From sequence record NC_031107.2: a stretch of 64,000 nucleotides of DNA; one strand, given 5' to 3'. The translations under genes and the position numbers were made by a program. Below, piece after piece: positions 184 through 64,000 of the stretch. The notes below the pieces were generated by a model that saw nothing but the letters and a program-made list of their open reading frames with translations, made no database searches and was not told where the DNA came from. Within the stretch, counting starts at the first letter, position 1; the number at the start of each line of letters is the position of its first letter.

Positions 184-657
184 ATGATGAAAGCCATGCT
201 GTTGGTTGGTGTTTTGTTGCTCGTTGGGTGCAACGGAATACAACGTAACAGCGTTACGGTGCAAACCTCCTCAGGTTGGCCTTTCCGGCAGCTTGAGGAG
301 CCACCATCTGCACCGACGAGTGTGTCCGGTGCGGCGGGGGAATTGGCCAAGAAAGTTTATGTGGCTGATGTAAACGCGTACGCTTATTACGTTTACTTAT
401 ACGCAAAATCCTTGAATACCTACGCGGAAACGCAAGGATGGCATCCACCTATGGTGGCACCGTTATGCGAAGAGTTTGTTTATCCCGAGGTACACGAGAT
501 TCCGATTTTCATCGAGTTGGATGAACGGGCTCGTAGTCCTCAGGCAATCAGCCGTGAGCTTTCACGTCAGCTGAAGATTTTGTTGACCAACTACCGCGCT
601 GACCGTAAAGCCGTCAAAGAGGCCGTTGCTGCTCACAAAGCCACCTGTCTGAACTGA
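184..657 (+). CDS. Lipoprotein, candidate outer-membrane spanin
   Basis: Signal peptide with lipobox LLVG-C, Pro-rich linker, two further Cys and a C-terminal helix; RBS GGAG; followed by a terminator. Confidence 0.5.
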   Translation: MMKAMLLVGVLLLVGCNGIQRNSVTVQTSSGWPFRQLEEPPSAPTSVSGAAGELAKKVYVADVNAYAYYVYLYAKSLNTYAETQGWHPPMVAPLCEEFVYPEVHEIPIFIELDERARSPQAISRELSRQLKILLTNYRADRKAVKEAVAAHKATCLN

Positions 658-661
658 GTCA

Positions 662-700
662 GTCCTCCTATGCCTTCGGGTGTAGGAGGACGCTCTTTTT
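662..700 (+). terminator. Intrinsic terminator
   Basis: gtcctccta-tgcc-TTCG-ggtg-taggaggac followed by a T run. Confidence 0.8.
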
Positions 701-748
701 TAACGTTTTCAACCATCCTAATGTAACCCCCTTATAAGGAAAATTCAA

Positions 749-1480
749 ATGTTACCAGCATACCCCAAAGTTATTGTCCCGACCCTGCCCTCGATTGTCG
801 TGGGGGCTGATGTAGAAACCAAAGCCATTCGCTCTGATGCGTATATCCTGGCGATGGGTCTGGTTGGGTTTGACGTACCGACGATGAAAATGGTCGGTTC
901 TTTTTACAGCACCGTGGACCCGAACGACGAAGCCGCCAAAGCCATCTTCCACGAAGATGAGCAAACCATCGGTTGGTGGCAGGGCAAAGGTGACCCGGAT
1001 TACGCACCGTGTGAAGAAGCGCGGGCCGAAGCCTGGTCAGGAAAAGAAAATATCAAGCAGGTACTGTGGGGAGCGAAAAAGTGGCTGGACGATATTTCTG
1101 CCAACCATCCCATCACCATTACCATGCGCGGGCCGGAGTTTGACTCGCCGATTATCCTCAATGCGTTTGCGCAGTGCGATGTTCCTCCATCGCGCTTCCG
1201 TAAGTTCTCTATTCTGGATTCCGATCGCACAGCTGAACGTCTGTCATACGCGTTTGGTTTGATTCCAGACTACCATGCCGAAGCCCATCACTGGACACGC
1301 GGCAAAGAAGCTTACGAGCACAACGCAGGGTTCGATGCGGCGAAAGAAGCCTATTGTACCGCACGTATTTACCACCTGGCACTGGTCGCGAAGACTTTCG
1401 GCTTCGAACGGATGCTGGAATGTCATCACGAGATGTGCAGTGGGGAGTATGTTGCGCCACAACTGAAAAGCCAGTTATAA
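749..1480 (+). CDS. DEDDh 3'-5' exonuclease (DnaQ/RNase T-like)
   Basis: ExoI GADVET, ExoII RGPEFD and ExoIII HNAGFDA motifs; RBS AAGGA. Confidence 0.75.
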   Translation: MLPAYPKVIVPTLPSIVVGADVETKAIRSDAYILAMGLVGFDVPTMKMVGSFYSTVDPNDEAAKAIFHEDEQTIGWWQGKGDPDYAPCEEARAEAWSGKENIKQVLWGAKKWLDDISANHPITITMRGPEFDSPIILNAFAQCDVPPSRFRKFSILDSDRTAERLSYAFGLIPDYHAEAHHWTRGKEAYEHNAGFDAAKEAYCTARIYHLALVAKTFGFERMLECHHEMCSGEYVAPQLKSQL

Positions 1481-1495
1481 GCTAAGAGAATAACA

Positions 1496-3007
1496 ATGAG
1501 AGACGTCGACGTAGCTGTTATCTACACAGACGGTAGCCACACAACTGCCCCGCTTGGTACCGGGGCAGGTATTCACGGTTACCTGTTCAACCATGGGATG
1601 ATGGAAGCAGAAGTGGGCTACCGCCATCCCAGTATTTCGGAAGCGATTACAACAGGAGGTTACAAGCAGGTCACGAAGGATACCAAACTTCCTGACGTGC
1701 CTGAGGATGTACAGTTCGTCGACGCTGTTGTGCCTGTGCCGAAAGAATTCTATTCTGACGTGGGTGAGTTAATTGCGTTCTTGACTTTGTTTGAAAGTGC
1801 GCCGTTTCAGGCACGCAACTATGTCATCTTTGTTGACGCCTCCTACGTGGTCAACACCTTTAACCAATGGATTGACGGTTGGGCAAAGAACGGCTGGCGT
1901 AAAGCAGACGGTACCCCTATCGCGAATGCCGAATTGATTCAGCGTGTCTGGGATGTCAAGCAACGCCTGAAAAAGGAAGGTCGGGGTGTTAAGGTTATCA
2001 AAATCAAAGGTCACTCTGGACGATATGGTAACGAACGTGCTGATGAGATGGCGCGTAAAGGCTCAGCTATCTCTGCAACCGGTGAAGGGGTTTTGTACCA
2101 AGCCTACTGGTCACAAGACGAACTCCCGGCGAGTGCCGAACCGGAAATCATAGGTGCGGGTAATGACATGGCGGCATACTCACCCGTGTGCACCATGAAA
2201 TACTGCTATCCGGTTGTGGAAGAAATCCCGCCTACTGCTGAGATTAATGGTGAAACGTTCCATTACATGTTCGGTGGCAACCACGCAAAGAACAAGGACG
2301 ATTTGGTGTTTATCGGGAAGATGATCCCGGATGCACACTTTGCCGTGTTGTTCACTAAGACCCCATGGGACAATGTGTATACGCTCGTGAACACGCATAA
2401 CCAGCAGGCGTGGGATGAAGTGCCGCGCAGTCGTCGTTATCAGCCGGTGGCCATTCTGAACAACGAGTTTGTCAAGCGTAAGAAGTTTGCCGAGGCGGCG
2501 AAAGACGGTATTCCGGTTTCGGAAATGCGGTTTAGCGAAGATAAGAACGTCTGGTTCTACGACGACCTGGCTATCTCGCGTATGCTGCGCCCGCCATTGC
2601 TGTCGTATCGTGCATTAAAGATTCGCGATGAGTTGGCAGCGTGGTTAAACGACACTTTGCTGGGCAAACCGCGGGTAGTGTTAAACGACATTACCGATAT
2701 GCTGTATGACGAGAACGGAAAGCCTCGCAAAGACTTCTATCGTTCCGTTGACCGTAGCTTCGATGTGAAGTTGAAGATTCCGGATGGGAAAGTCGAGATA
2801 CCGGTTATCCTGACGCGCTCCATCGACATTCCGTCGCGTACGGAACTTAACCGTATCAAAGAACCCGAGGGACGTTTCTACGTTGCAGTAACACGGCCAC
2901 AAGAGCGTTACATCGAGTATGCCATTGTGTACATCGGTAAAGAGTATCACGGTCTATGGTGTGCTTACTACGCGAACAAACGTATCCTGAACGACAAAGA
3001 GGTATAA
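1496..3007 (+). CDS. rnhA: Ribonuclease HI with long C-terminal extension (phiKZ-like)
   Basis: IYTDGS, VGELIA, VDASYV, WAKNGWRKADG and KIKGHSGRYGNERADEMAR motifs. Confidence 0.9.
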   Translation: MRDVDVAVIYTDGSHTTAPLGTGAGIHGYLFNHGMMEAEVGYRHPSISEAITTGGYKQVTKDTKLPDVPEDVQFVDAVVPVPKEFYSDVGELIAFLTLFESAPFQARNYVIFVDASYVVNTFNQWIDGWAKNGWRKADGTPIANAELIQRVWDVKQRLKKEGRGVKVIKIKGHSGRYGNERADEMARKGSAISATGEGVLYQAYWSQDELPASAEPEIIGAGNDMAAYSPVCTMKYCYPVVEEIPPTAEINGETFHYMFGGNHAKNKDDLVFIGKMIPDAHFAVLFTKTPWDNVYTLVNTHNQQAWDEVPRSRRYQPVAILNNEFVKRKKFAEAAKDGIPVSEMRFSEDKNVWFYDDLAISRMLRPPLLSYRALKIRDELAAWLNDTLLGKPRVVLNDITDMLYDENGKPRKDFYRSVDRSFDVKLKIPDGKVEIPVILTRSIDIPSRTELNRIKEPEGRFYVAVTRPQERYIEYAIVYIGKEYHGLWCAYYANKRILNDKEV

Positions 3008-3008
3008 C

Positions 3009-3743
3009 ATGAAGCGAGTCGTGAGTGAGTCACTCACGCTCCACGCACAGAGTTTGATTAAGTGTGTGGAGCAATACGGTTGGCAGTCCTGGTTATCGCA
3101 TCTACGACTGATGGACGATACGCTGGAACGGGACTGGGACAAACTGGAAGTGGTGGGTGCTGAGGCTGCTCGCGACGTTGTCGCTGAATTGGTCACGGAT
3201 ACGATTGCGCGTTACAACGCTCGCTGCGATGAACCCATTCCTAAAACGGTTCCGCCGCAAATACCGCCACTCCCGACCATCGACCGTCAGGCATGTCGTA
3301 TCTGGACAATGGAGGAGCTGTATGATGAACATGTCCGGATGCTTAAACCAGATGTGTTAATCACGGGTGCGTTGAACTGGTATCTCACCCGTTTTTGGTC
3401 GGAGCTGTGTTCTATCGGTAACGACTGGGATAATAACCCGCAGGTTATCTGGTACGATCGCCAGCAATTCCATGAGTCGCTGAAAGGCGGATCAATCTGC
3501 CCGTTATACGTTATCACCAGCCCACAACAGTTGAACTTCGTCACCGAGGCGGATACGTACAGTGGTCTGGTTGAAGCAGTGGCAACCAACCCGATGGGCT
3601 TTTACAAACAGGGCGATGCGTGGATATTGACCGATGACATGTCTGGGTATCTGCTAGACCCGGATGATTTACACTCGGACGATGACCACTTCATTGAATA
3701 CTGGGTGTTAACCGAGGAAGCCCTTCGAAAAACTTTCAAATAG
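3009..3743 (+). CDS. Hypothetical protein
   Basis: 244-aa ORF starting 1 nt after the RNase H stop. Confidence 0.7.
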   Translation: MKRVVSESLTLHAQSLIKCVEQYGWQSWLSHLRLMDDTLERDWDKLEVVGAEAARDVVAELVTDTIARYNARCDEPIPKTVPPQIPPLPTIDRQACRIWTMEELYDEHVRMLKPDVLITGALNWYLTRFWSELCSIGNDWDNNPQVIWYDRQQFHESLKGGSICPLYVITSPQQLNFVTEADTYSGLVEAVATNPMGFYKQGDAWILTDDMSGYLLDPDDLHSDDDHFIEYWVLTEEALRKTFK

Positions 3744-3751
3744 ATATTATC
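3742..3751 (+). promoter_or_regulatory. Candidate phage promoter motif AGATATTATC (copy 1)
   Basis: Identical 10-mer also at 13448 and 60156; each copy lies 32-36 nt upstream of a start codon with an A-run about 10-14 nt further upstream. Confidence 0.6.
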
Positions 3752-3783
3752 TGTACGAACTGCACCACCTTAAGGAGTATGTA

Positions 3784-4518
3784 ATGCTAAAGGTACAGGT
3801 GCCACAATTGCAGAAAATCAACCCCTCGTTATTCGAGGGGTTTTTCTATAAATTTTGGCCTCACTACTTTCGCGACGAACTCAATGACAATCTGAACTGG
3901 GGGCTGTTGCAAAACGAGTTCTTTTATGTTGGTCAAAGCGTTGCCATTTCTGTCTATGCGGCGATGTTGCGGGAACTGTTCGACTCGGTGAATCTGGGCC
4001 GACAACCGATGTATCACCACGTCGAGGTGGATTTAGGGATTCACTACGATGCGTACGAAGCAGAGGGAATTGGGCAGGAGTACGGTTTCACGGATGAAGA
4101 AGTGGAGTCAGCCATCTACGTTTGGGTTGAGCGTTACTCCAACTGGCTGATGAACCTGGACATGGTAAACCAAATCTCGGGTGCTTTTGATGGTGTGTAT
4201 CAGGAATTGCGCATCATCATGAACACACACCATTTGCTCGGTTACTGGTACGAGTTTTACACCACGGAGTCCAAACTGTGGTCGTCAAACAGTATCGCTA
4301 TCGGGATTCAGGAAGGTGATTACGAAGCGGTGCATTACGGGCCGTGGCAAGGACATGCCGGAGACAGTTTCTACCAGAAGATGGATGTGCACTCCTGGGA
4401 GTTCTTCTTATCAAACGGGAAGATGTATTTGGAAGACGGGGCGACCCAGATTCCAGTTGGGCAGATGACCACTATGTGTCGTCTGAATGATTTAGTCGGT
4501 ACCACCATTAACTTTTAA
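3784..4518 (+). CDS. Hypothetical protein
   Basis: 244-aa ORF with AAGGAG RBS. Confidence 0.8.
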   Translation: MLKVQVPQLQKINPSLFEGFFYKFWPHYFRDELNDNLNWGLLQNEFFYVGQSVAISVYAAMLRELFDSVNLGRQPMYHHVEVDLGIHYDAYEAEGIGQEYGFTDEEVESAIYVWVERYSNWLMNLDMVNQISGAFDGVYQELRIIMNTHHLLGYWYEFYTTESKLWSSNSIAIGIQEGDYEAVHYGPWQGHAGDSFYQKMDVHSWEFFLSNGKMYLEDGATQIPVGQMTTMCRLNDLVGTTINF

Positions 4519-4534
4519 ACCTTTAGGAGCATTT

Positions 4535-4912
4535 ATGATTCACGCCGAAATGAAAGAACTGATTGAAAACAACCTGGACGCGGGCCTGGTACTCTACATC
4601 ATCCATCCGGAGCTTAAGCAGGAGTGGTTGCAGGGACGTATTACCGATTTACGCTGGGCGGTGTTAGACACCGACGGCCAAATGGCCATCAAAGACATGG
4701 GACGTACCTTGCGGCAGGTAGCAGTCGACAATGGCAAGCTGGTTCAGGTGAAGACCACTCAATCGGACAGCTACTGCGCTTTCTCCAATGAAGCAGATGT
4801 GGTTGTCCTCGTGGGCTTCGAAGAAGAGAACTCGCCGTACTTTGGTGAGAATGTTATCATCGCGAAGTTCCGTGCTGTGACCGAACTCCCTCGAAAGGTC
4901 TTCCCGATTTGA
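4535..4912 (+). CDS. Hypothetical protein
   Basis: 125-aa ORF with AGGAG RBS. Confidence 0.8.
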   Translation: MIHAEMKELIENNLDAGLVLYIIHPELKQEWLQGRITDLRWAVLDTDGQMAIKDMGRTLRQVAVDNGKLVQVKTTQSDSYCAFSNEADVVVLVGFEEENSPYFGENVIIAKFRAVTELPRKVFPI

Positions 4913-17078: not shown

Positions 17079-17724
17079 CACGTTAGACAAACTCGACAAG
17101 CAACGTGAAGCCGACGTTTTGAAAGTGGCCGGTGAATCGGTACGTGTCGAGACTGAGAAAGAGTACGTGATGTGGGTGAAGCCGACGGAAGAAGGCTGGG
17201 CGTGGTTGTTTGAACAAGCCGCCGACATCTACATGGACGTGCTGATGCCGATTGCACGCGGGCGTCGTCGGGTACGTTTACACAGTGGCGGGAAAGCTGA
17301 GCTGACTGTGAAACGTATGGGTGCGGAAGGCAAGATTGAGGAGAACTCGGATATCGGGTTTGGTGCAGGCTTGTCTTTCTACGAAGACGGGCACCTCGCG
17401 CATTTAGTGCGCCGCATCCACATGGATGCCGGTGAACTGAAAGACCGTGGTGCGAAACACTGGGACATCGACCTGTTCTATACCGTGTCCGGACACCCGG
17501 CACTGGAAACACAGGAAGACTTTGATGCCTTAGTGAGCGAGCTCCGCGATGCAACCTCGTTTGGTCGTTGGGTGAAGGTGGAATTGGAAGTAGAACGTTT
17601 TGAAATCGACTCGATTAAAGACGTAATGCCGTTCCCTGTGGCCGAAGCGATTCCGGGTGGGCCGAAAGACCCAGAGACGCAGGAGATGCTACGCCATTAC
17701 TGGGATTCTGAAACCCGCATCTAA
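17065..17724 (+). CDS. CYTH-family triphosphate tunnel metalloenzyme
   Basis: ETEKEY (ExE-like), RVRL, ELTVKR, WDIDLF and VELEVE motifs in CYTH order. Confidence 0.7.
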   Translation: MGLFDTLDKLDKQREADVLKVAGESVRVETEKEYVMWVKPTEEGWAWLFEQAADIYMDVLMPIARGRRRVRLHSGGKAELTVKRMGAEGKIEENSDIGFGAGLSFYEDGHLAHLVRRIHMDAGELKDRGAKHWDIDLFYTVSGHPALETQEDFDALVSELRDATSFGRWVKVELEVERFEIDSIKDVMPFPVAEAIPGGPKDPETQEMLRHYWDSETRI

Positions 17725-56341: not shown

Positions 56342-58450
56342 ATGATACTGCGTGAATCTGATTGGGGGTACTATCCGGGCTCGTTGCCGGATGACACCAC
56401 ACCCAATAAGAGCTTTATGAAATTTGCGAGTTTGCTAAAACAATTGGGCGTCAAGCATTATTACGTCCACCTCGCGCTGCACAATCCAGATTTGCTGGGT
56501 GTCGACCCGTTCTCTCCAGACCTGACGTTGGAGCAGAAGGCTGCAATCATTACTGAGTGCGCTGAGAACCCGTGGTACTTCTTTCGTGAATGTGTGCGCG
56601 TACCTGCGGATGGTATGAAAAACGGTTTACCTTTTCGTATCGACCGCGGTAACTTCTCGATGTACTGGATTTTCTTTAACAACATCGATGCGGCTGTCGA
56701 GTTCCTTCGTCAGCACGGTAAGACGGTGGGGATGTCTGCGCTGCTGTTATGGCTGATGCGCTTCCTGGAAAACTCCCGTACGATTCTCGTGACCAAAGGC
56801 CCTGCCCTGCGTGAAGAAACCATCAACAAGATGAAACAGTTGCGCAACGGATTACCGGACTACCTCTGGCCACATCACCCAGATGACCCCGACAACCGCG
56901 AGACATTCGCCTGTCTGGCACAGGGTAACAAGTTGATTACCGGCATCGGCCAGAACGATGCAGAATCAGCAAACGGTGTGGGCCGTGGACTGACAGCCGG
57001 TCGACTGTTCGGCGATGAAGGCCCCTTCACCAAAAACATCCACCACATTCTTCCTGCGGCGCTGGCATCGGGAACGGCTGCGCGCCGTATCAACGAAGCC
57101 GAAGGTGTGCCTTACGGTAACGTCTTCGCCACAACGCCAGGCGACCTGGCCACGGAAGAAGGTGCGTACATGTACGAACTGATGACATCCGGAATTATGT
57201 GGGATGAACGTTACATTGACATCCCATCGCGTACCCAGCTGATAGACATTATCCGCAAAGGGTCTACCGCGAAGATTCCACGTATCATGTTCTACGTGAA
57301 ATACAACCACCGTCAACTGGGCACCACCGATGAGGAGCTGGCAGACATGATCGCCAACGCCCCAGGTACCCCAGACCAAATCCGCCGTGACTTCGGTGGG
57401 GAATGGACAACCGGTGGCTTTAACAAGCCGTTCTCGGGTGATGACGCGCGTCGCATGAACGCCTCGAGAATGCGTGCGGTTTACAAGGACATCTCGCCGT
57501 CGAATTACGTAACAGACTGGTATTACACCGAAGAAGAAATGATCACCAAGTTACACGATCGCCACATCATCGGATTGGATACCTCAGAAGCGGTTGGTCG
57601 AGATGCGATAGCCATGTCTATCGTGAATTCCAGCAACGGGGAATATGCTGGTAAACTTACAGTGAACGAAACCAACGTCATCGGGTTTGCTATTCACTTG
57701 GCAGACTTTATGGTGCGGTATCCGAACACTGTCCTGATTCTGGAACGACGGTCAACCGGTTCCTCCGTAGCAGACGCAATCATCCTTCAGCTGCAGACGC
57801 GAGTACCCGACTTACACCGTCGCTTGTATGTGAAAGTGACCCAGGACTATGCTCGTACTCATGAGCTCTATAAAGAGTTCCACCGTGGTCCGGTGGGGAG
57901 TGCAGAACGGTTCTGGGACAAATTCCGTAAATACATCGGTTTCTCAACCGACCAGGATAAACGCCGTAAGTTGTACGGTGAAGTCTTCACCATGGCGTTA
58001 CGCCTCACCGCGGATACATTGCGGTCGGGGGAACTAATCGACCAAATCCTTAGTCTGGTTGAACGTAATGGTCGTATTGACCACAAAGCGTCCGGTCACG
58101 ATGACTTGGTTGTTTCATGGTTACTGGCAATGTGGCTACTTCTCTTCGGCAACAACTTAGGCCATTACGGCATAAGCAACAGTCGCCTGATGATGCGTAA
58201 CCGCAACCTGCTAGAGAACAATGAGAACATCGATGAAGAGGAACAGGTCGAGGAGGAAGAAAAGCAACAAAAACTGATGGGGGAAATCGAGGCGGCGATG
58301 CGGGAGGCCAACGGTCTCACAGACCCAGTTGCCCAAATGCGGAGTCGAAATCGGTTGCAATCTCTCATTGCCCAACTCAACACTGATACGCGGAATGTCG
58401 CGTCGATGGAAAGCTTAAAAGAGCTTATCCAACGTCAGAGGATGAAGTGA
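56342..58450 (+). CDS. terL: Terminase large subunit
   Basis: NPWYFFRE, Walker A LRQHGKT, Walker B LFGDE, coupling ATTP, RNase H-like IGLDTS...GRD and HDDLVVSW motifs. Confidence 0.93.
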   Translation: MILRESDWGYYPGSLPDDTTPNKSFMKFASLLKQLGVKHYYVHLALHNPDLLGVDPFSPDLTLEQKAAIITECAENPWYFFRECVRVPADGMKNGLPFRIDRGNFSMYWIFFNNIDAAVEFLRQHGKTVGMSALLLWLMRFLENSRTILVTKGPALREETINKMKQLRNGLPDYLWPHHPDDPDNRETFACLAQGNKLITGIGQNDAESANGVGRGLTAGRLFGDEGPFTKNIHHILPAALASGTAARRINEAEGVPYGNVFATTPGDLATEEGAYMYELMTSGIMWDERYIDIPSRTQLIDIIRKGSTAKIPRIMFYVKYNHRQLGTTDEELADMIANAPGTPDQIRRDFGGEWTTGGFNKPFSGDDARRMNASRMRAVYKDISPSNYVTDWYYTEEEMITKLHDRHIIGLDTSEAVGRDAIAMSIVNSSNGEYAGKLTVNETNVIGFAIHLADFMVRYPNTVLILERRSTGSSVADAIILQLQTRVPDLHRRLYVKVTQDYARTHELYKEFHRGPVGSAERFWDKFRKYIGFSTDQDKRRKLYGEVFTMALRLTADTLRSGELIDQILSLVERNGRIDHKASGHDDLVVSWLLAMWLLLFGNNLGHYGISNSRLMMRNRNLLENNENIDEEEQVEEEEKQQKLMGEIEAAMREANGLTDPVAQMRSRNRLQSLIAQLNTDTRNVASMESLKELIQRQRMK

Positions 58451-58686
58451 TGACTCTTACTTACTATATCGTAGTAGCCCTTATGTGGGTTTGTCTGTTC
58501 TTGATGGTAAGACATACCTGCACCGTAGTGAACATATACGGGCGGCGTAACGGGGCGTGTGTACGCACGGTTCGCGCAGCACAGTTCACTGGTGTATTAG
58601 GTTTACTTGTCGTCGGCACGGGCACAACCTACGCGGCGCATGTGGTGTTTACACTCCATGCGTTAGCAGTCTCCGGAGTCCATTGA
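58447..58686 (+). CDS. Small two-transmembrane-helix protein
   Basis: GTGA overlap with the terL stop; hydrophobic segments YYIVVALMWVCLFLMV and FTGVLGLLVVGTGTTYAAHVVF. Confidence 0.55.
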   Translation: MMTLTYYIVVALMWVCLFLMVRHTCTVVNIYGRRNGACVRTVRAAQFTGVLGLLVVGTGTTYAAHVVFTLHALAVSGVH

Positions 58687-58713
58687 TCACAACTCAAAAA
58701 ATTAATTCGAGTT

Positions 58714-58758
58714 AGCCACTACCCGTTTCATGGGGTAGTGGCTTTTTATTTTATTTTT
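58714..58758 (+). terminator. Intrinsic terminator between convergent genes
   Basis: agccactaccc/gggtagtggct stem plus T tract. Confidence 0.8.
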
Positions 58759-60127
58759 GCAGTGAGCGAATCAGGAAGTACAACAGCAAGGCATTACGCA
58801 AAGCTGCCAACGCAGACTCGTGACGGATGTGGGTTTCACGGGCAGCCAGTTTCTCAATCCGGGTACGTAACGATAATACGTACGGGTTCGGGGATTTCGA
58901 AGCCTGGTAAAGTGAACGCATTCGCAGGAGAATTGTTCCGGCGTCATTAAAGTTCAATCGACTGCTGACCACCTCATCGAAAGCGTGTGACAAGGTGTCT
59001 TCCATGATGCTGTTGACTTCATCGCGTTTCTTACCAAGCGGCAATCCAGCAATGTAAATCAGCAGTGTCTTTAACGCAGCAGGTGACGCCTTGGGCACCA
59101 TCTCCAACACCACTCGTGCCAACTCCTCTTTGTAGAGGTTGTTGATGTCGTAGGACGCGTCAAACAGGTTTTGCTTGGCGATATCCAGCGCCCCCACTTT
59201 GTCACGAATGATGGACTCGCCATCCAACTCGATACGCGATGACTGCACCACCATACGGCTGTTCTCACGACGTACCCGGTCGAGCACCGCGTAATAGTCC
59301 TTCACGGTTTGCTTGGTACGGGTGTTCAGGTCGGTGATAAAGCGCAACACCAGATCAGGTGTGTCGAAGCGTTTGACCGCATCGTAGTTCGGGTATTCCG
59401 GCGAGCAGAAATATTCCGCACGTTCTTGCATGTGCAGGCCCCAGTTACCCAAACGACGAATATCGAACTTCAACGACAGCATCGAGTACGTCGCTTCGGC
59501 GGCATTCATGTCCACCGGTTTCGGGAAGAAGTGGTAGTAGATACTCGAGTAGAACTTAAACTGGAGCACCACAACCAAATCAACAGCAGCGGCGTGAATC
59601 TCTTTGTCGGTGAACTTCTTCATCATCAGGTGCAGCAGATAGACGATGCAGAGGTTAAACGTGTCCCCGGCGACGTTCCAGTCAGTGTTGATCGCCTCGG
59701 CTTCTTTGATGAGCTCAGCCAGGTAGTCTTCATCGACTTTCAACACTTCATCGAACAGGCGATTACGGTCAGAGTCGTAAAAACGAATCTGGTGAACACC
59801 CAGCAGGTTTGACCCTTTCCATTCGACGTTACCATCACGTCCCATTACCGAAGCCACGTACATGCGAATACGTTGCGCCAGCTTACGGTCAATCACCACG
59901 TTCTTAAACGCGGTATCGAACGCTTTACGCAAACGGTCATTCTTAAGAGCTTCGGTGGCAACCACCATCCCCATCGGGACGTAGCCCCCAAACCCGTAGT
60001 CGTAATACAGTCCCGTGGCGAAAGAACCATCGTCAAAGAACGGGTCACGGCCGTGTCTTTCACGGGCTACTTTTACCTCAGGACTGGTATAAACACCTGA
60101 TGTAAAATCATAAACTAGATCGGACAT
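58751..60127 (-). CDS. Conserved jumbo-phage protein of unknown function
   Basis: 458-aa helical ORF with GAGG RBS. Confidence 0.75.
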   Translation of the reverse strand: MSDLVYDFTSGVYTSPEVKVARERHGRDPFFDDGSFATGLYYDYGFGGYVPMGMVVATEALKNDRLRKAFDTAFKNVVIDRKLAQRIRMYVASVMGRDGNVEWKGSNLLGVHQIRFYDSDRNRLFDEVLKVDEDYLAELIKEAEAINTDWNVAGDTFNLCIVYLLHLMMKKFTDKEIHAAAVDLVVVLQFKFYSSIYYHFFPKPVDMNAAEATYSMLSLKFDIRRLGNWGLHMQERAEYFCSPEYPNYDAVKRFDTPDLVLRFITDLNTRTKQTVKDYYAVLDRVRRENSRMVVQSSRIELDGESIIRDKVGALDIAKQNLFDASYDINNLYKEELARVVLEMVPKASPAALKTLLIYIAGLPLGKKRDEVNSIMEDTLSHAFDEVVSSRLNFNDAGTILLRMRSLYQASKSPNPYVLSLRTRIEKLAARETHIRHESALAALRNALLLYFLIRSLQK

Positions 60128-60155
60128 GGCAATGAACCTCTAAAAAATTACGGAT

Positions 60156-60165
60156 AGATATTATC
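60156..60165 (+). promoter_or_regulatory. Candidate phage promoter motif AGATATTATC (copy 3)
   Basis: In a divergent intergenic region 36 nt upstream of ATG 60202, preceded by AAAAAATTAC. Confidence 0.6.
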
Positions 60166-60201
60166 CTTTTGATAGTAGTATACCTAAAGGAGATTTTTCC
60201 C

Positions 60202-61335
60202 ATGAAGAAATATGAACGTAAAACGACGTGGCACCGTGCGCTACGTACCGAAGCAATCTCACAAGACCAGGATGTGAAGATGTGGGTTCTGCCACACGGG
60301 GTGATTTGCGAACTCACCCGAATCGGTGGACTGCCTATTCTTCGTAACGGCAATTATGATGCCGTAAACTCATTCCTGGCAAAGACGCTTTTAGACGCGG
60401 GTATCGAAAACGAGGTACTGTTTTACACGACCCGCGTTATACCGCAGACCTTATCACGTTGGCTAACGCACTGGCTGTCTACTGACCCCAGTGAATCTGA
60501 TCCAGAACTAAGTTCCGTCACCGTTACCACAATGGGACAATATCCGCAAAAGCCTTTGCCATTTCAGGTTAACGTGGTGGAACCAATTCTGGTTAAAGCT
60601 GGGGCTGTGTTTGATATCATCAAACAGAAATCCCGCAATAACGCCGTGTCCCAATTTATCATTGAGGCAAACGGCGAATATTACCGACTTGAACCGGTAC
60701 GTAACACCACCGGGAAAATCATTGACTGTACAGAGTACGGCTATGTGGTTCGCACACCCACAGGCCACACCTTCCTGGCAACAATGATCTCACGTCGAAT
60801 TCAGTCGCAACTAAAACACCATAACGTGCGACCGGATGATCTTATCGGCACTGAGGTTAAGATCGAATACACAATGTTTACCGAAGGGACTCGACTGTGC
60901 AACTATAAGTCTTCGATAATCTTTCGAAGCTATGCCCTGGATAATCTGGGCGACTCTTACCCTGCGTCATACGATGGCCCCACACCCTTTAAGCCTTTAC
61001 CCGGCGGAAGCAATCCAGCGCTCTTGACTGTAACGCGTTGCGGCCGTGCGGATATCGTGCAAAAGGACGGGGTAATTTATGGTGTGGAGCGGGAGTCCGG
61101 TGAGACTCTCTTTAAATTCGAACCTGGTGTATCCCGCGGTATGTATGCGGCTCAGTTCGAAAATAAAGGGAAGACTGAAACCTGGCGTTTCGTGTCTGAG
61201 TTCGCAGTAGATGCAATAGACCCCACGGCTTTCGTAGAAAGCGTTGCTACCCAAATATTTGGGGCGACGGGCTATAGTCTGCAACGACTTGGGCTGTGTT
61301 ACGCTGAAACCGCACCACAGTCAATGGAAACTTAA
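60202..61335 (+). CDS. Hypothetical protein with degenerate ATP-dependent DNA ligase-like architecture
   Basis: AAGGAG RBS; LPHG..C, LRNGN, EVLFY, YYRLEP and LIGTEVKIEY...T...R segments resemble ligase/OB motifs. Confidence 0.45.
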   Translation: MKKYERKTTWHRALRTEAISQDQDVKMWVLPHGVICELTRIGGLPILRNGNYDAVNSFLAKTLLDAGIENEVLFYTTRVIPQTLSRWLTHWLSTDPSESDPELSSVTVTTMGQYPQKPLPFQVNVVEPILVKAGAVFDIIKQKSRNNAVSQFIIEANGEYYRLEPVRNTTGKIIDCTEYGYVVRTPTGHTFLATMISRRIQSQLKHHNVRPDDLIGTEVKIEYTMFTEGTRLCNYKSSIIFRSYALDNLGDSYPASYDGPTPFKPLPGGSNPALLTVTRCGRADIVQKDGVIYGVERESGETLFKFEPGVSRGMYAAQFENKGKTETWRFVSEFAVDAIDPTAFVESVATQIFGATGYSLQRLGLCYAETAPQSMET

Positions 61336-61345
61336 GGAGCACCCC

Positions 61346-61855
61346 ATGTTTACTGCGCCAACCATGCTCTCTGGTAGCAGCCTGCAGGTAGCGTGCCAAG
61401 ATGCACGACTGATGGCTCTCTGCGACCAGAGCATACTTACTGCGATGATGACCCACAACCCTTTAGGTGACTACGGAAATACCAGCGAGATATTGGCAGT
61501 TGCCGCCGTGCTCCGTCGTATTTACGGTCATTTCACAATCGTGGATCTGTGTGACTTTATCGATAACCACGCAGATTTAGCGAAAGGGTTGGTGGCATTA
61601 ACGCAAGACGGTGTATCAAGCTTTGATAGCGGCATCGGCAATTTCTTGGACATTGGTTCAGGCTTTGACGCGGGAATGATGTTCATCACGCGTGAACGCT
61701 ACGTAGCCGTCTGGGATTTCATGGCGAAGATGGGCGTGCATGTTCCGGCAAAGATCATGCACTACCCAACGCACGACCTGAATATCTTCGGCGAACCGGG
61801 TCTATGGGTAAAACCTGTACACCTGGGACTCGATGGGTTAACCGTCAAGTGCTAA
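61346..61855 (+). CDS. Hypothetical protein
   Basis: AAGGAG RBS before ATG 61346. Confidence 0.75.
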   Translation: MFTAPTMLSGSSLQVACQDARLMALCDQSILTAMMTHNPLGDYGNTSEILAVAAVLRRIYGHFTIVDLCDFIDNHADLAKGLVALTQDGVSSFDSGIGNFLDIGSGFDAGMMFITRERYVAVWDFMAKMGVHVPAKIMHYPTHDLNIFGEPGLWVKPVHLGLDGLTVKC

Positions 61856-61862
61856 CTGTCCG

Positions 61863-61902
61863 GCGCACTCTCTTCGGAGAGTGCGCAATTCTTTTTATTT
61901 TT
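61863..61902 (+). terminator. Intrinsic terminator
   Basis: gcgcactctc-TTCG-gagagtgcgc plus T tract. Confidence 0.85.
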
Positions 61903-61920
61903 TCCTGAAGGATAACGAGT

Positions 61921-62484
61921 ATGTCTGAGAGTATGTTTGTTTTACATCACGATGTGTTTTCCCTTACCTCAACCAGCAACATTGCGTTAGCGGAAAACTG
62001 GCAGGAGGACATCGCTGACCACCTGCGTGATTTAGTCCGGGTTGACAATCAGGATAATCGTTACATCGTCTGGTACCGTTCCAACGACACCCCAGGCTTT
62101 ATCTTCGTCATCGCTCCGGTAGAAGACCGCCATTACATCTACGTCAAAGACAAACTGAACAACGAAACCGGCAAAGGTCTACGTGAGGTGTTGGAGGCAG
62201 AAGGGGATTTGGACAAATACTTCCTGTGCGCCACCACAATGACGCCGGAGGAGTGGGAAGGGGTAACCTTCCATGGCGTAGCATTGGACGTCACAGAACG
62301 CGCTACAAACGATCTAATCAGGGATTTCATCGGCAGTGCCGCTGACGAACTTATTCGTCATCGCGATGGATTGTCTGAAGGTCAGAATGCGGTGTTGTTT
62401 TTAACCGGTAAGTTTACCGAAGACGACATTGCCGAGCTCGAACAATCTGGTTTCGAATTGGGTAATCTGCTGTACAAATTTTAA
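61921..62484 (+). CDS. Hypothetical acidic protein
   Basis: AAGGA RBS, 187 aa. Confidence 0.75.
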   Translation: MSESMFVLHHDVFSLTSTSNIALAENWQEDIADHLRDLVRVDNQDNRYIVWYRSNDTPGFIFVIAPVEDRHYIYVKDKLNNETGKGLREVLEAEGDLDKYFLCATTMTPEEWEGVTFHGVALDVTERATNDLIRDFIGSAADELIRHRDGLSEGQNAVLFLTGKFTEDDIAELEQSGFELGNLLYKF

Positions 62485-62489
62485 CCAAT

Positions 62490-62520
62490 CGGGTACCTTC
62501 GGGTGCCCGTTTATTTTTTT
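62490..62520 (+). terminator. Intrinsic terminator
   Basis: cgggtacc-TTCG-ggtgcccg plus T tract. Confidence 0.85.
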
Positions 62521-62957
62521 GCCCTGCTCACTTTTTGAACAGACTGTGTACACTTTTTAACCAGCGGCGATAAGGGGTCTAAAAAGCTCTCTGAGGGCAT
62601 TTATCTTGACCCGGTACGTTTGGGTGTCTTACCCCCATTTATGGCCTTGTCGTGCCGTACAGGACGTCTGAGCGACATCCCCGACCCGGCGAGCCGACCG
62701 CCGCGACGATCAAAATATCATGTACGCTTCGCGTTGGAAGGGAAGGGGAGAGTGGATCGATTTGTAATTCGCATCTCTGCGAATTACCTTCGAGTGCTTT
62801 TCCTGACTTACTGCCTATCCGGCCCCTAAGGCCGGGATTATTTAAAAATTCCTTTTTAAATTAGTGACTTACGTCACTCACTGGTTTTCAGGTTTTGATC
62901 TTGGGCGGATCGCTTTCATTATACGCGCGTACGCGCACACCCGTATCCTCCAGGATC

Positions 62958-63060
62958 TTTTAAATATATATAAATATAATTATTATATTAATATCTTTAG
63001 ATATTATTAAATATATTAAAATATATAAATATCTTTAGATATAAATAAATATATTTAAAA
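62958..63060. repeat. 103-bp A/T tract with terminal inverted repeat and two internal palindromic direct repeats (origin-like)
   Basis: Only 4 G/C in 103 bp; TTTTAAATATAT (62958-62969) is the exact reverse complement of 63049-63060; AATATCTTTAGATAT at 62990-63004 and 63028-63042. Confidence 0.85.
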
Positions 63061-63129
63061 CGCGTGTGCGAGCGCGCGTGATCCTTATTACGAGATCGTG
63101 ATCGGGAGTGAGGGGTGTACCGGGAGCAA

Positions 63130-64000
63130 TTATTTTTTACAAGGCTACCCAGTAGTGTGACAAGTTGACCCCGATGGCATTACGGGAAAGCCACTCCCGA
63201 CCGAGAATGAGTCTCAGCTCCACGTAGCGTGAATGGGAGTGGCGATTTTTCAACAACGAATTCTTACAGGCTGGTAAGATGGGGAACCCAAGCGACCCGA
63301 GAGTCGTAGGGACTGCTGTGTGTTGGCTCCGCCCCCTGGGAAACCTCGGGGCTATTTTTTTCTCCCCTGCCAACTCGATTACGTCAGCCAGTAGTTATAT
63401 GCGAAATGATTCTCAAGCGTCACTGCACTGAGAAGCTGTCTTGTCTGCGTGTGCAGAGCTCCACCCTGGTCTTCACCAGCCAGGGTGCTTTTTCGAGAAT
63501 TTCCGACCGTGGAAGCCCTCGACAAAGCAAATCGCTCAGCCTAACACTGTCGTTTTGTTTATTATGTTCGGTCAAAGTGTTTCGCGGCACTTCGAACGGG
63601 TGGTTCCGAGCGGGGAAACTTTGAACCACCCACCCATTCAGGTATCTGGCTTTTGCATTCGGCTCAGGGGCCGTAGTGCAGGGCGCTTTCACCGCCACAC
63701 ATGTGCCGGGTACCGTGGCAGCTCCAGATGCGGGGCTTCGAGTATACGCCGTTGAACTTACCTCCGGTAGTCCTCGTTGTTCCTGCTCTGGGGTGCGGCC
63801 AATCCGAATTCGGCGTTGCGTCGATAGGGGTCTGCGTGTAGAACCGTAGACTTGGGGTTACTCCCGAGGGAGGTGATCCAATCTTGGCGGCTCGGGAAGA
63901 CGAGAGGGGTGGGTGTTCTCGCTGTGAAGCGTCGATGCCTGGCTGAATAAAATTTACAAGTTAGCCGTTGGGTATGTTAAACAACCCACGGAGAACTGCG
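63130..64000 (+). ncRNA. Candidate structured non-coding RNA region (unclassified; may run past the window end)
   Basis: No credible ORF; many stems, e.g. 63190-63198/63235-63243, 63331-63352, 63462-63487, 63598-63631, 63965-63991. Confidence 0.35.

Follow-up and report, generated by a model that had tools for sequence, protein, structure and literature searches.

A single-copy A/T-rich element between inverted GGATC boxes: a candidate replication origin in Erwinia phage Asesino and its nucleus-forming relatives

Where might DNA replication begin in nucleus-forming phages, whose compartment keeps out most host proteins, and which DNA signals would mark the place? A site that bears on this question lies in the window analyzed here, a stretch of 64,000 nucleotides that is the final 64 kb of Erwinia phage vB_EamM_Asesino (KX397364.2, 246,290 bp; window position = record position - 182,290), the last 1601 bases of the record corresponding to 62400-64000 with 100% identity. 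A sequence-only reading had described a symmetric element in which an A/T core lies between alternating purine–pyrimidine arms, proposed that it is a replication origin or else a packaging or anchoring site, and guessed that the DNA belongs to a nucleus-forming jumbo phage. The guess was correct, as Asesino is a chimallivirus in which the phage nucleus has been shown experimentally (PMC11724907). Given that base 1 of Asesino was set via alignment to its phage family and that headful packaging has been inferred from terminase homology only (PMC6256631), the end of the record just past the element has no physical meaning. Genome-wide counts were made on a whole 246-kb genome, G001, that is near-identical to Asesino.

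Anatomy and surroundings of the element

Direct reading of the sequence recovered every feature of the earlier description, and further features were found around them (Table 1). The ends of the core form a perfect 12-bp terminal inverted repeat, and the interrupted palindrome that the two dyads share (6-bp arms with a TT spacer) starts at 62990 and 63028, 38 bp apart. The left arm includes a perfect 10-bp palindrome (62922-62931), the right arm is complementary to the left at 79–81%, and the GGATC of Box R is inverted relative to that of Box L. The upstream box occurs once in the genome, and conserved AAAAA...TTTTAAA...ACTTA columns are present in all four genera that carry the element; phages of the Wellington type have the box in duplicate. 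A comparison of motifs across the genome does not support this box as a general promoter motif. It resembles an IHF site by eye in Wellington-type phages, a reading that we rejected for Asesino, where no sequence within one mismatch of the IHF consensus occurs in the 0.8 kb around the element.

Table 1. Coordinates of the element and associated features (window positions unless marked otherwise)
Feature	Position	Strand	Description
Terminator-like GC hairpin with T-rich tail	62818-62846 (stem 62818-62836)	+	Conserved in Stratton and phiEaH2
Upstream box	62840-62878		A5/T5 dyad, then conserved ACTTA, then small hairpin
Left-flank GATC sites	62897-62900, 62908-62911		Read from the sequence
Left CG/CA arm	62920-62940		21-nt perfect purine–pyrimidine alternation
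Box L	62944-62961		Near-invariant; ends in GGATC + T4; adjoins core; best-conserved columns of the 16-genome alignment
Third left GATC site	62954-62957		Inside Box L
A/T core, putative DNA-unwinding element	62958-63060		103 bp, 4 G/C, 96% A+T
Dyad 1	62989-63006		8-bp arms, TT spacer
Dyad 2	63028-63042		6-bp arms, TT spacer; second copy of the dyad 1 palindrome
Right CG arm	63060-63080		Imperfect inverted copy of left arm
Box R	63075-63103		Near-invariant; CGCGT, GATCC, TTATTA, then further GATC; 3 GATC sites
Right GATC sites	63080, 63094, 63100		Inside Box R
T6AC box	63133-63160 (T6AC itself 63133-63140)	+	Points away from core; conserved in relatives
Dam homologue gene	about record 98.1-98.9 kb; L011:8637-9452	-	Outside the window

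Several of these features are unique in the genome. The core is the lowest-GC 103-bp window of G001, with 4 G/C compared with 26 in the next region and a median of 53, and the 14-nt dyad sequence is found in G001 only as the two copies in the core; a scan of a viral collection with a 14-nt pattern was non-specific. The 21-nt left arm is the longest alternating purine–pyrimidine run of the genome, with runs of 19 and 18 nt elsewhere. We estimate that about one such run per five genomes of this size is expected by chance, and its length is meaningful only because most relatives, compared by eye, keep the alternation. As a long, uninterrupted, CG-rich alternation, the left arm has the character of a Z-DNA-prone tract, and the suggestion that it may adopt this form receives indirect support. 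The full 176-nt element, folded as single-stranded DNA, scores far better than its shuffled versions (z = -6.3), a result that is due to the arms and not to the core, which alone has no extra self-complementarity (z = -1.2).

The element is housed in a stretch of about 1.5 kb without credible genes that follows gp286 (ending at 62484), and the gene for the large terminase (56342-58450) lies 4.5 kb upstream, a distance that is conserved. The annotated genes gp287–gp289 (62620-62829, 63406-63624, and 63676-63849) are not conserved as ORFs in the Stratton, phiEaH2, and SPN3US-type records and are probably not genes; the small ORFs annotated in this stretch vary among Asesino, Stratton, and phiEaH2 and are missing from annotations of the SPN3US type. 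Neighboring genes match only PHROGs families of unknown function, except for an HslV-family peptidase match for gp1, and searches with these genes returned no Pfam family, no fold assignment, and no usable Atlas look-alike; no initiator gene was identified among them by family or fold, and no small terminase is known near the element. There were no Rfam matches in 58000-64000 and no tRNAs in 60000-64000.

The surroundings also contain putative transcription signals. The terminator-like hairpin is predicted to close an upstream noncoding transcript, and the element would therefore not simply be read through. This upstream noncoding block (62560-62850) may be a small RNA that ends in the hairpin, and Asesino, Stratton, and phiEaH2 have almost the same sequence between about 62690 and 62960. 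A CACTTTTT box occurs twice, at 62529 and 62551. On the other side of the core, the T6AC box belongs to a class of terminator-adjacent, late-type promoter-like sites with a strand bias (13 sites on the plus strand vs. 2 on the minus strand), and it is likely the start of a conserved noncoding RNA region that, together with a tRNA cluster (record 612-4665), is directly downstream of the element. The sequence of 63100-64000, continuing to record position 1, is ORF-poor and 75–80% identical at the nucleotide level across Erskinevirus, Seoulvirus, and Machinavirus; it has several terminator-like hairpins on the plus strand, the T6AC promoter-like box at its head, and no Rfam match, and it probably encodes one or more structured noncoding RNAs. 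A second, strand-specific motif is found upstream of genes and consists in full of 26 nt (an A-tract, AGATA, and an AT-rich core of 10 nt, with C after it). G001 carries 13 strong sites of this motif, all on the plus strand, including one at about window position 60158 upstream of gp284, and its 10-nt core is identical in SPN3US, Huxley, and a metagenome relative. By its description in PMC7598289, this motif is of the expected early, virion-polymerase promoter type.

Conservation and the GATC sites

Relatives were expected to share the architecture at the syntenic position if the element is functional, and this is what we observe in all close and moderately distant relatives that were compared. 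In addition to Asesino, carriers include Stratton and phiEaH2 (Erskinevirus); SPN3US, SaP7, SPFM4, pEa_SNUABM_29, and SPAsTU (Seoulvirus); Huxley, pEa_SNUABM_4, and pEa_SNUABM_6 (Machinavirus); and pEa_SNUABM_11 (Wellingtonvirus), as well as several metagenome contigs. Across genera and contigs, the element is located 4–6 kb downstream of the large terminase. The identity between Asesino and Stratton is 92% over 62801-63000 vs. 64–71% in the adjacent gene; this higher conservation argues against an assembly artifact, the concern raised with the sequence-only reading, which is also excluded by the recurrence of the architecture in 16 or more genomes that were assembled independently.

In an alignment of 16 genomes, the invariant parts are Box L and Box R, which adjoin the core and each contain a GGATC, forming an inverted pair; the box just before the left arm is also conserved. 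The remaining parts are conserved in form. By eye, ACGCG-type half-sites make the left arm a self-dyad in all relatives compared except L167, and an alternating run of 15–25 nt is kept in most relatives despite sequence change; the long run is broken in one sub-clade of Machinavirus (pEa4, L161, and L167). The right arm varies from 7 to 25 nt and is only 7–9 nt in genera other than those of Asesino and SPN3US, so that the earlier description of it as an inverted copy of the left arm holds for these two phages but not for the other genera, in which it has shrunk. The core is shortest, at about 60 bp, in the Wellington type and longest, at about 215 bp, in contig L157. One or two perfect dyads account for 80–100% of its few G/C positions in 12 of the 16 elements. 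Across lineages, these dyads have at least six different stem sequences, with symmetry kept and sequence changed; elements of the Wellington type have no dyads.

At the syntenic position, a sister clade, CR5/Phobos (L170–L172, about 17150-17480), has a different AT-rich island, composed of a T6AC box, a GATC with a G6 run on each side, and then about 110 nt of A, T, and G with almost no C. Like the Asesino element, this island is downstream of the terminase, is the most AT-rich stretch of the fetched locus, and has a T6AC box alongside; unlike the Asesino element, it is characterized by the G-run motif and the C-free tract and lacks the CG arms, Box L, Box R, and the dyads.

The GGATC of the boxes is noteworthy given the distribution of GATC in the genome. 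G001 has 366 GATC sites vs. 960 expected (0.38 of expectation), and the densest cluster is formed by the six sites in 250 bp that flank the core, three per side. We extended this comparison to four complete genomes from four genera (an Asesino-type genome, SPN3US, Huxley, and a Wellington-like genome), in which GATC is at 0.33–0.52 of expectation; CTAG is at 0.06–0.20 of expectation in the same genomes. In each of the four, the 80-bp window with the highest A+T content and the densest cluster of GATC sites both fall on the element, the combination of an unwinding-type region with clustered GATC that is characteristic of oriC, and this coincidence in four genera rules out chance and assembly artifact. 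A D12-class adenine methylase (PF02086, E values of 1e-53 to 1e-58) is encoded by all three genomes that were searched (G001, SPN3US, and Huxley). The best solved relative of the G001 protein is E. coli Dam (full length, E value of 4e-59), followed by DpnM, both of which are GATC enzymes; a phage-encoded Dam, as expected for a P1-type pac site, is thus present. No match to SeqA (PF03925) was found in four phage genomes, and the phage genomes contained neither HU/IHF nor a second Dam family. Together, these sequence comparisons indicate that the stretch of about 300 bp from about 62840 to 63160 is a real, unique, and strongly constrained single-copy cis-acting DNA site.

A candidate origin and competing explanations

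We posit that the element is the primary replication origin of this clade of nucleus-forming phages, with a probability of about 0.42; it is the best candidate so far for where these phages start copying their DNA, and packaging would be the less likely function. The sequence-only reading, which named origin, packaging, and anchoring together, is thus borne out in part: the unique meltable core, the conserved boxes, the GATC cluster with Dam, and the dyads that preserve symmetry fit a cis-acting site of the origin type, but the same results are compatible with packaging, transcriptional, and topological roles. We favor the origin because composition defines the core, whose length can change greatly while the adjoining boxes are fixed, because the G/C-bearing dyads make most sense as hairpins that form after opening, and because the site is in a gap between the terminator-like hairpin and an outward promoter-like box, both predicted. 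A core of 60–215 bp between fixed boxes would fit an unwinding element defined by composition better than a protein complex that depends on spacing.

The arrangement suggests, more tentatively, a master origin of a new design, in which a phage protein acts on two inverted GGATC boxes, the A/T core opens and forms small hairpins, and the phage-encoded Dam controls firing, all within a compartment closed to the host's initiation proteins. In such a system, the core would be the one site of the genome that opens easily under negative superhelical stress, that is, a DNA-unwinding element, and Box L and Box R, with their GGATC facing the core, would be bound as an inverted pair by a putative phage protein, either an initiator or a helicase loader. 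The GC-rich alternating arms and the flanking GC hairpins would block the spread of the bubble and may absorb supercoils via conformational change. Once the core is open, its small G/C-containing dyads could fold into hairpins that hold the bubble open or provide a priming signal. Finally, methylation of the GATC cluster by the phage Dam homologue would report that a given copy has recently been replicated and so time its firing.

Analysis of GC skew, proposed earlier as a check on the origin, gave no signal either way: neither the skew of the whole genome nor that of fourfold sites switches polarity at the element or anywhere else. With most genes encoded on one strand, the whole-genome skew shows a nearly steady rise, and fourfold-site skew of same-strand genes has no step. 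Given that the genome is transcribed almost entirely in one direction, the skew says nothing for or against an origin; the lack of a polarity switch is also expected if replication is mostly driven by recombination, in which case a single origin would matter little. Matches to the DnaA box with at most one mismatch are not clustered (two in 0.8 kb vs. 1.5 per kb genome-wide), and a search for iterons identified only A/T repeats with start-to-start spacings of 8–10 bp and two to three ACGCG pentamers in the left arm, with no long iterons. The literature that we searched contained nothing relevant on an origin or pac site in SPN3US, phiKZ, or Chimalliviridae and no description of this element, and two recent reviews of nucleus-forming phages never mention an origin; origin-prediction software has produced only low-reliability calls, for two giant phages (PMC12390700).

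The main alternative is a site for the initiation of packaging (pac), at which a terminase complex would assemble on the GATC boxes of both sides, bend the core, and make the first headful cut; cleavage would require full methylation of the DNA, as it does at P1 pac. A P1-type pac would account equally well for the two or three GATC sites on each side of a center of about 100 bp, the phage Dam, and the conserved distance of 4.5 kb downstream from the large terminase. Against it, a core of 60–215 bp would be awkward for a complex that bridges both sides. Only two TGATCR hexamers are present in the 0.8 kb around the element even though six GATC sites flank the core, the headful packaging of the T4 type in this group has been assumed from terminase homology only (PMC6256631, PMC5694885), and the absence of a known small terminase nearby also counts against packaging. 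GenBank records that start or end in or beside the core (SPN3US, SEGD1, EC001, JN03, Lh1B, Proteus phage 7, and SPFM2, 16, and 17) and two metagenome contigs that end at the element (L156 and L158) are suggestive of a packaging cut; however, such breaks are equally expected from poor coverage of 96% A/T DNA, they occur at at least three different positions, and most assemblies cross the element (among them G001, phiEaH2, and SaP7). The other end of contig L156 does not start at the right side of the element. We rejected the clustering of SPFM record ends near the element as evidence, given that at least three of those records are corrupted. The records of SPFM5, SPFM10, and SPFM20 (LR535903.1, LR535908.1, and LR535917.1; L146, L147, and L148) are built of 60-nt blocks whose order is reversed on the same strand, a pattern expected if FASTA lines had been reversed without complementing, which also accounts for their fragmented gene calls. 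On balance, we consider a pac site unlikely, and a role in transcription, which ranks after it, is unlikely as well. In the latter case, the noncoding RNA and tRNA cluster downstream would have in the core and dyads a specialized promoter, an activating tract upstream of it, or an insulator, and the dyads might be hairpin-type recognition signals for a phage RNA polymerase. The right half of dyad 1 (62998-63007) is an exact copy of the 10-nt early-promoter core, a match with an estimated chance probability of about 0.01; the SPN3US dyad keeps 9 of the 10 positions, the element heads the conserved noncoding RNA and tRNA region, and no early promoter above the weak class is found from record 242.4 kb to 4.9 kb. 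However, the rest of the 26-nt motif is absent at the element, and the full matrix gives scores of 3 at the dyad 1 site and 10 inside the core, compared with 32–48 at true sites. The Machinavirus dyad has diverged and matches at 7 of 10 positions, whereas the promoters of that genome keep the core; Wellington-type elements lack dyads altogether. The low score and the Machinavirus drift argue that the A/T core is no ordinary promoter, and neither the promoter matrix nor the comparison of upstream boxes identified a recognizable phage promoter reading into the core; a promoter-derived recognition signal within it is possible. Moreover, a separate promoter-like box for the downstream RNA lies outside the element, and the GATC cluster, inverted boxes, and CG arms are absent from the other promoter sites of the genome.

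A topological or architectural site appears improbable. Such a site could take up supercoils through melting and a B-to-Z transition, act as a strong target for a topoisomerase, or tether the genome to the nuclear shell or some other scaffold, in line with the anchoring suggested earlier. The alternation retained by most relatives, the position of the core as the most easily melted site of the genome, and the strong folding of the whole element are consistent with it; the loss of the long alternating run in pEa4, L161, and L167 and the ordinary folding of the core alone are not, and the near-invariant boxes point to sequence-specific recognition. Low-complexity A/T DNA, a 12-bp terminal inverted repeat, and occasional assembly breaks could also be the marks of an assembly artifact, of chance, or of a dead mobile element with terminal inverted repeats. 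This explanation is extremely improbable and in practice is refuted by the comparative data: four genera, sampled by at least 16 independent assemblies, share the conserved boxes at a single syntenic position, and the element occurs once per genome, lacks a target-site duplication, and is more conserved than the neighboring gene.

For the candidate origin that we favor, the element offers a precise, single-copy target of about 300 bp in a phage already studied by cell biology (Asesino) and in one with a genetic system (SPN3US). If it is instead where packaging starts, it would be the first pac site in the family. Whether origin or pac, the phage Dam and the otherwise avoided GATC sites would have a dedicated target.

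Comparison with known systems

The element shares with E. coli oriC and the P1 plasmid origin oriR an AT-rich opening region, a local GATC cluster far above genome density, and an available Dam. In contrast to these origins, it has no excess of DnaA boxes, no SeqA, and no iterons, and its core is much longer and purer in A/T; host proteins presumably cannot enter the phage nucleus. Box R can also be aligned, weakly, with the oriC R 13-mer and the GATC after it, a short match of borderline significance after multiple tests. The pac site of phage P1 contains groups of four and three GATC hexamers and needs Dam methylation. Like the element, it has GATC groups on both sides of a center of about 100 bp, a phage-encoded Dam, and a location near the terminase genes; unlike P1 pac, the element does not keep the TGATCR consensus, has no IHF site, and has a center that varies from about 60 to 215 bp.

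At T4 oriF and oriG and at the primary origin of T7, a promoter is followed by an AT-rich unwinding element and RNA polymerase makes the primer RNA. The Asesino element is similarly an AT-rich tract in a noncoding gap, its core holds the promoter-core-like 10-mer, and Asesino is a large lytic phage with a T4-like terminase and RNA polymerases of its own. The element differs from these origins in that no full phage promoter was recognized reading into the core, and its inverted boxes, CG arms, and GATC cluster are without counterpart in T4 and T7. The left arm also resembles telRL of phage N15, with an exact 15-nt identity between 62917-62931 (arm and flank) and the center of telO (L176:1296-1310). 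Both are alternating CG/TA palindromes, that of Asesino being only 10 bp, and the match is probably a coincidence or a convergence on this type of palindrome. We rejected a protelomerase target (tel site) for Asesino given that the palindrome is limited to 10 bp, that the protelomerase catalytic domain (PF16684) had no match in three genomes, and that the genomes assemble as circularly permuted. The overall layout also recalls the oriS and oriL origins of herpesviruses, where an A/T center is likewise located between conserved boxes in inverted orientation that form part of a larger dyad; the likeness is one of design only, without homology.
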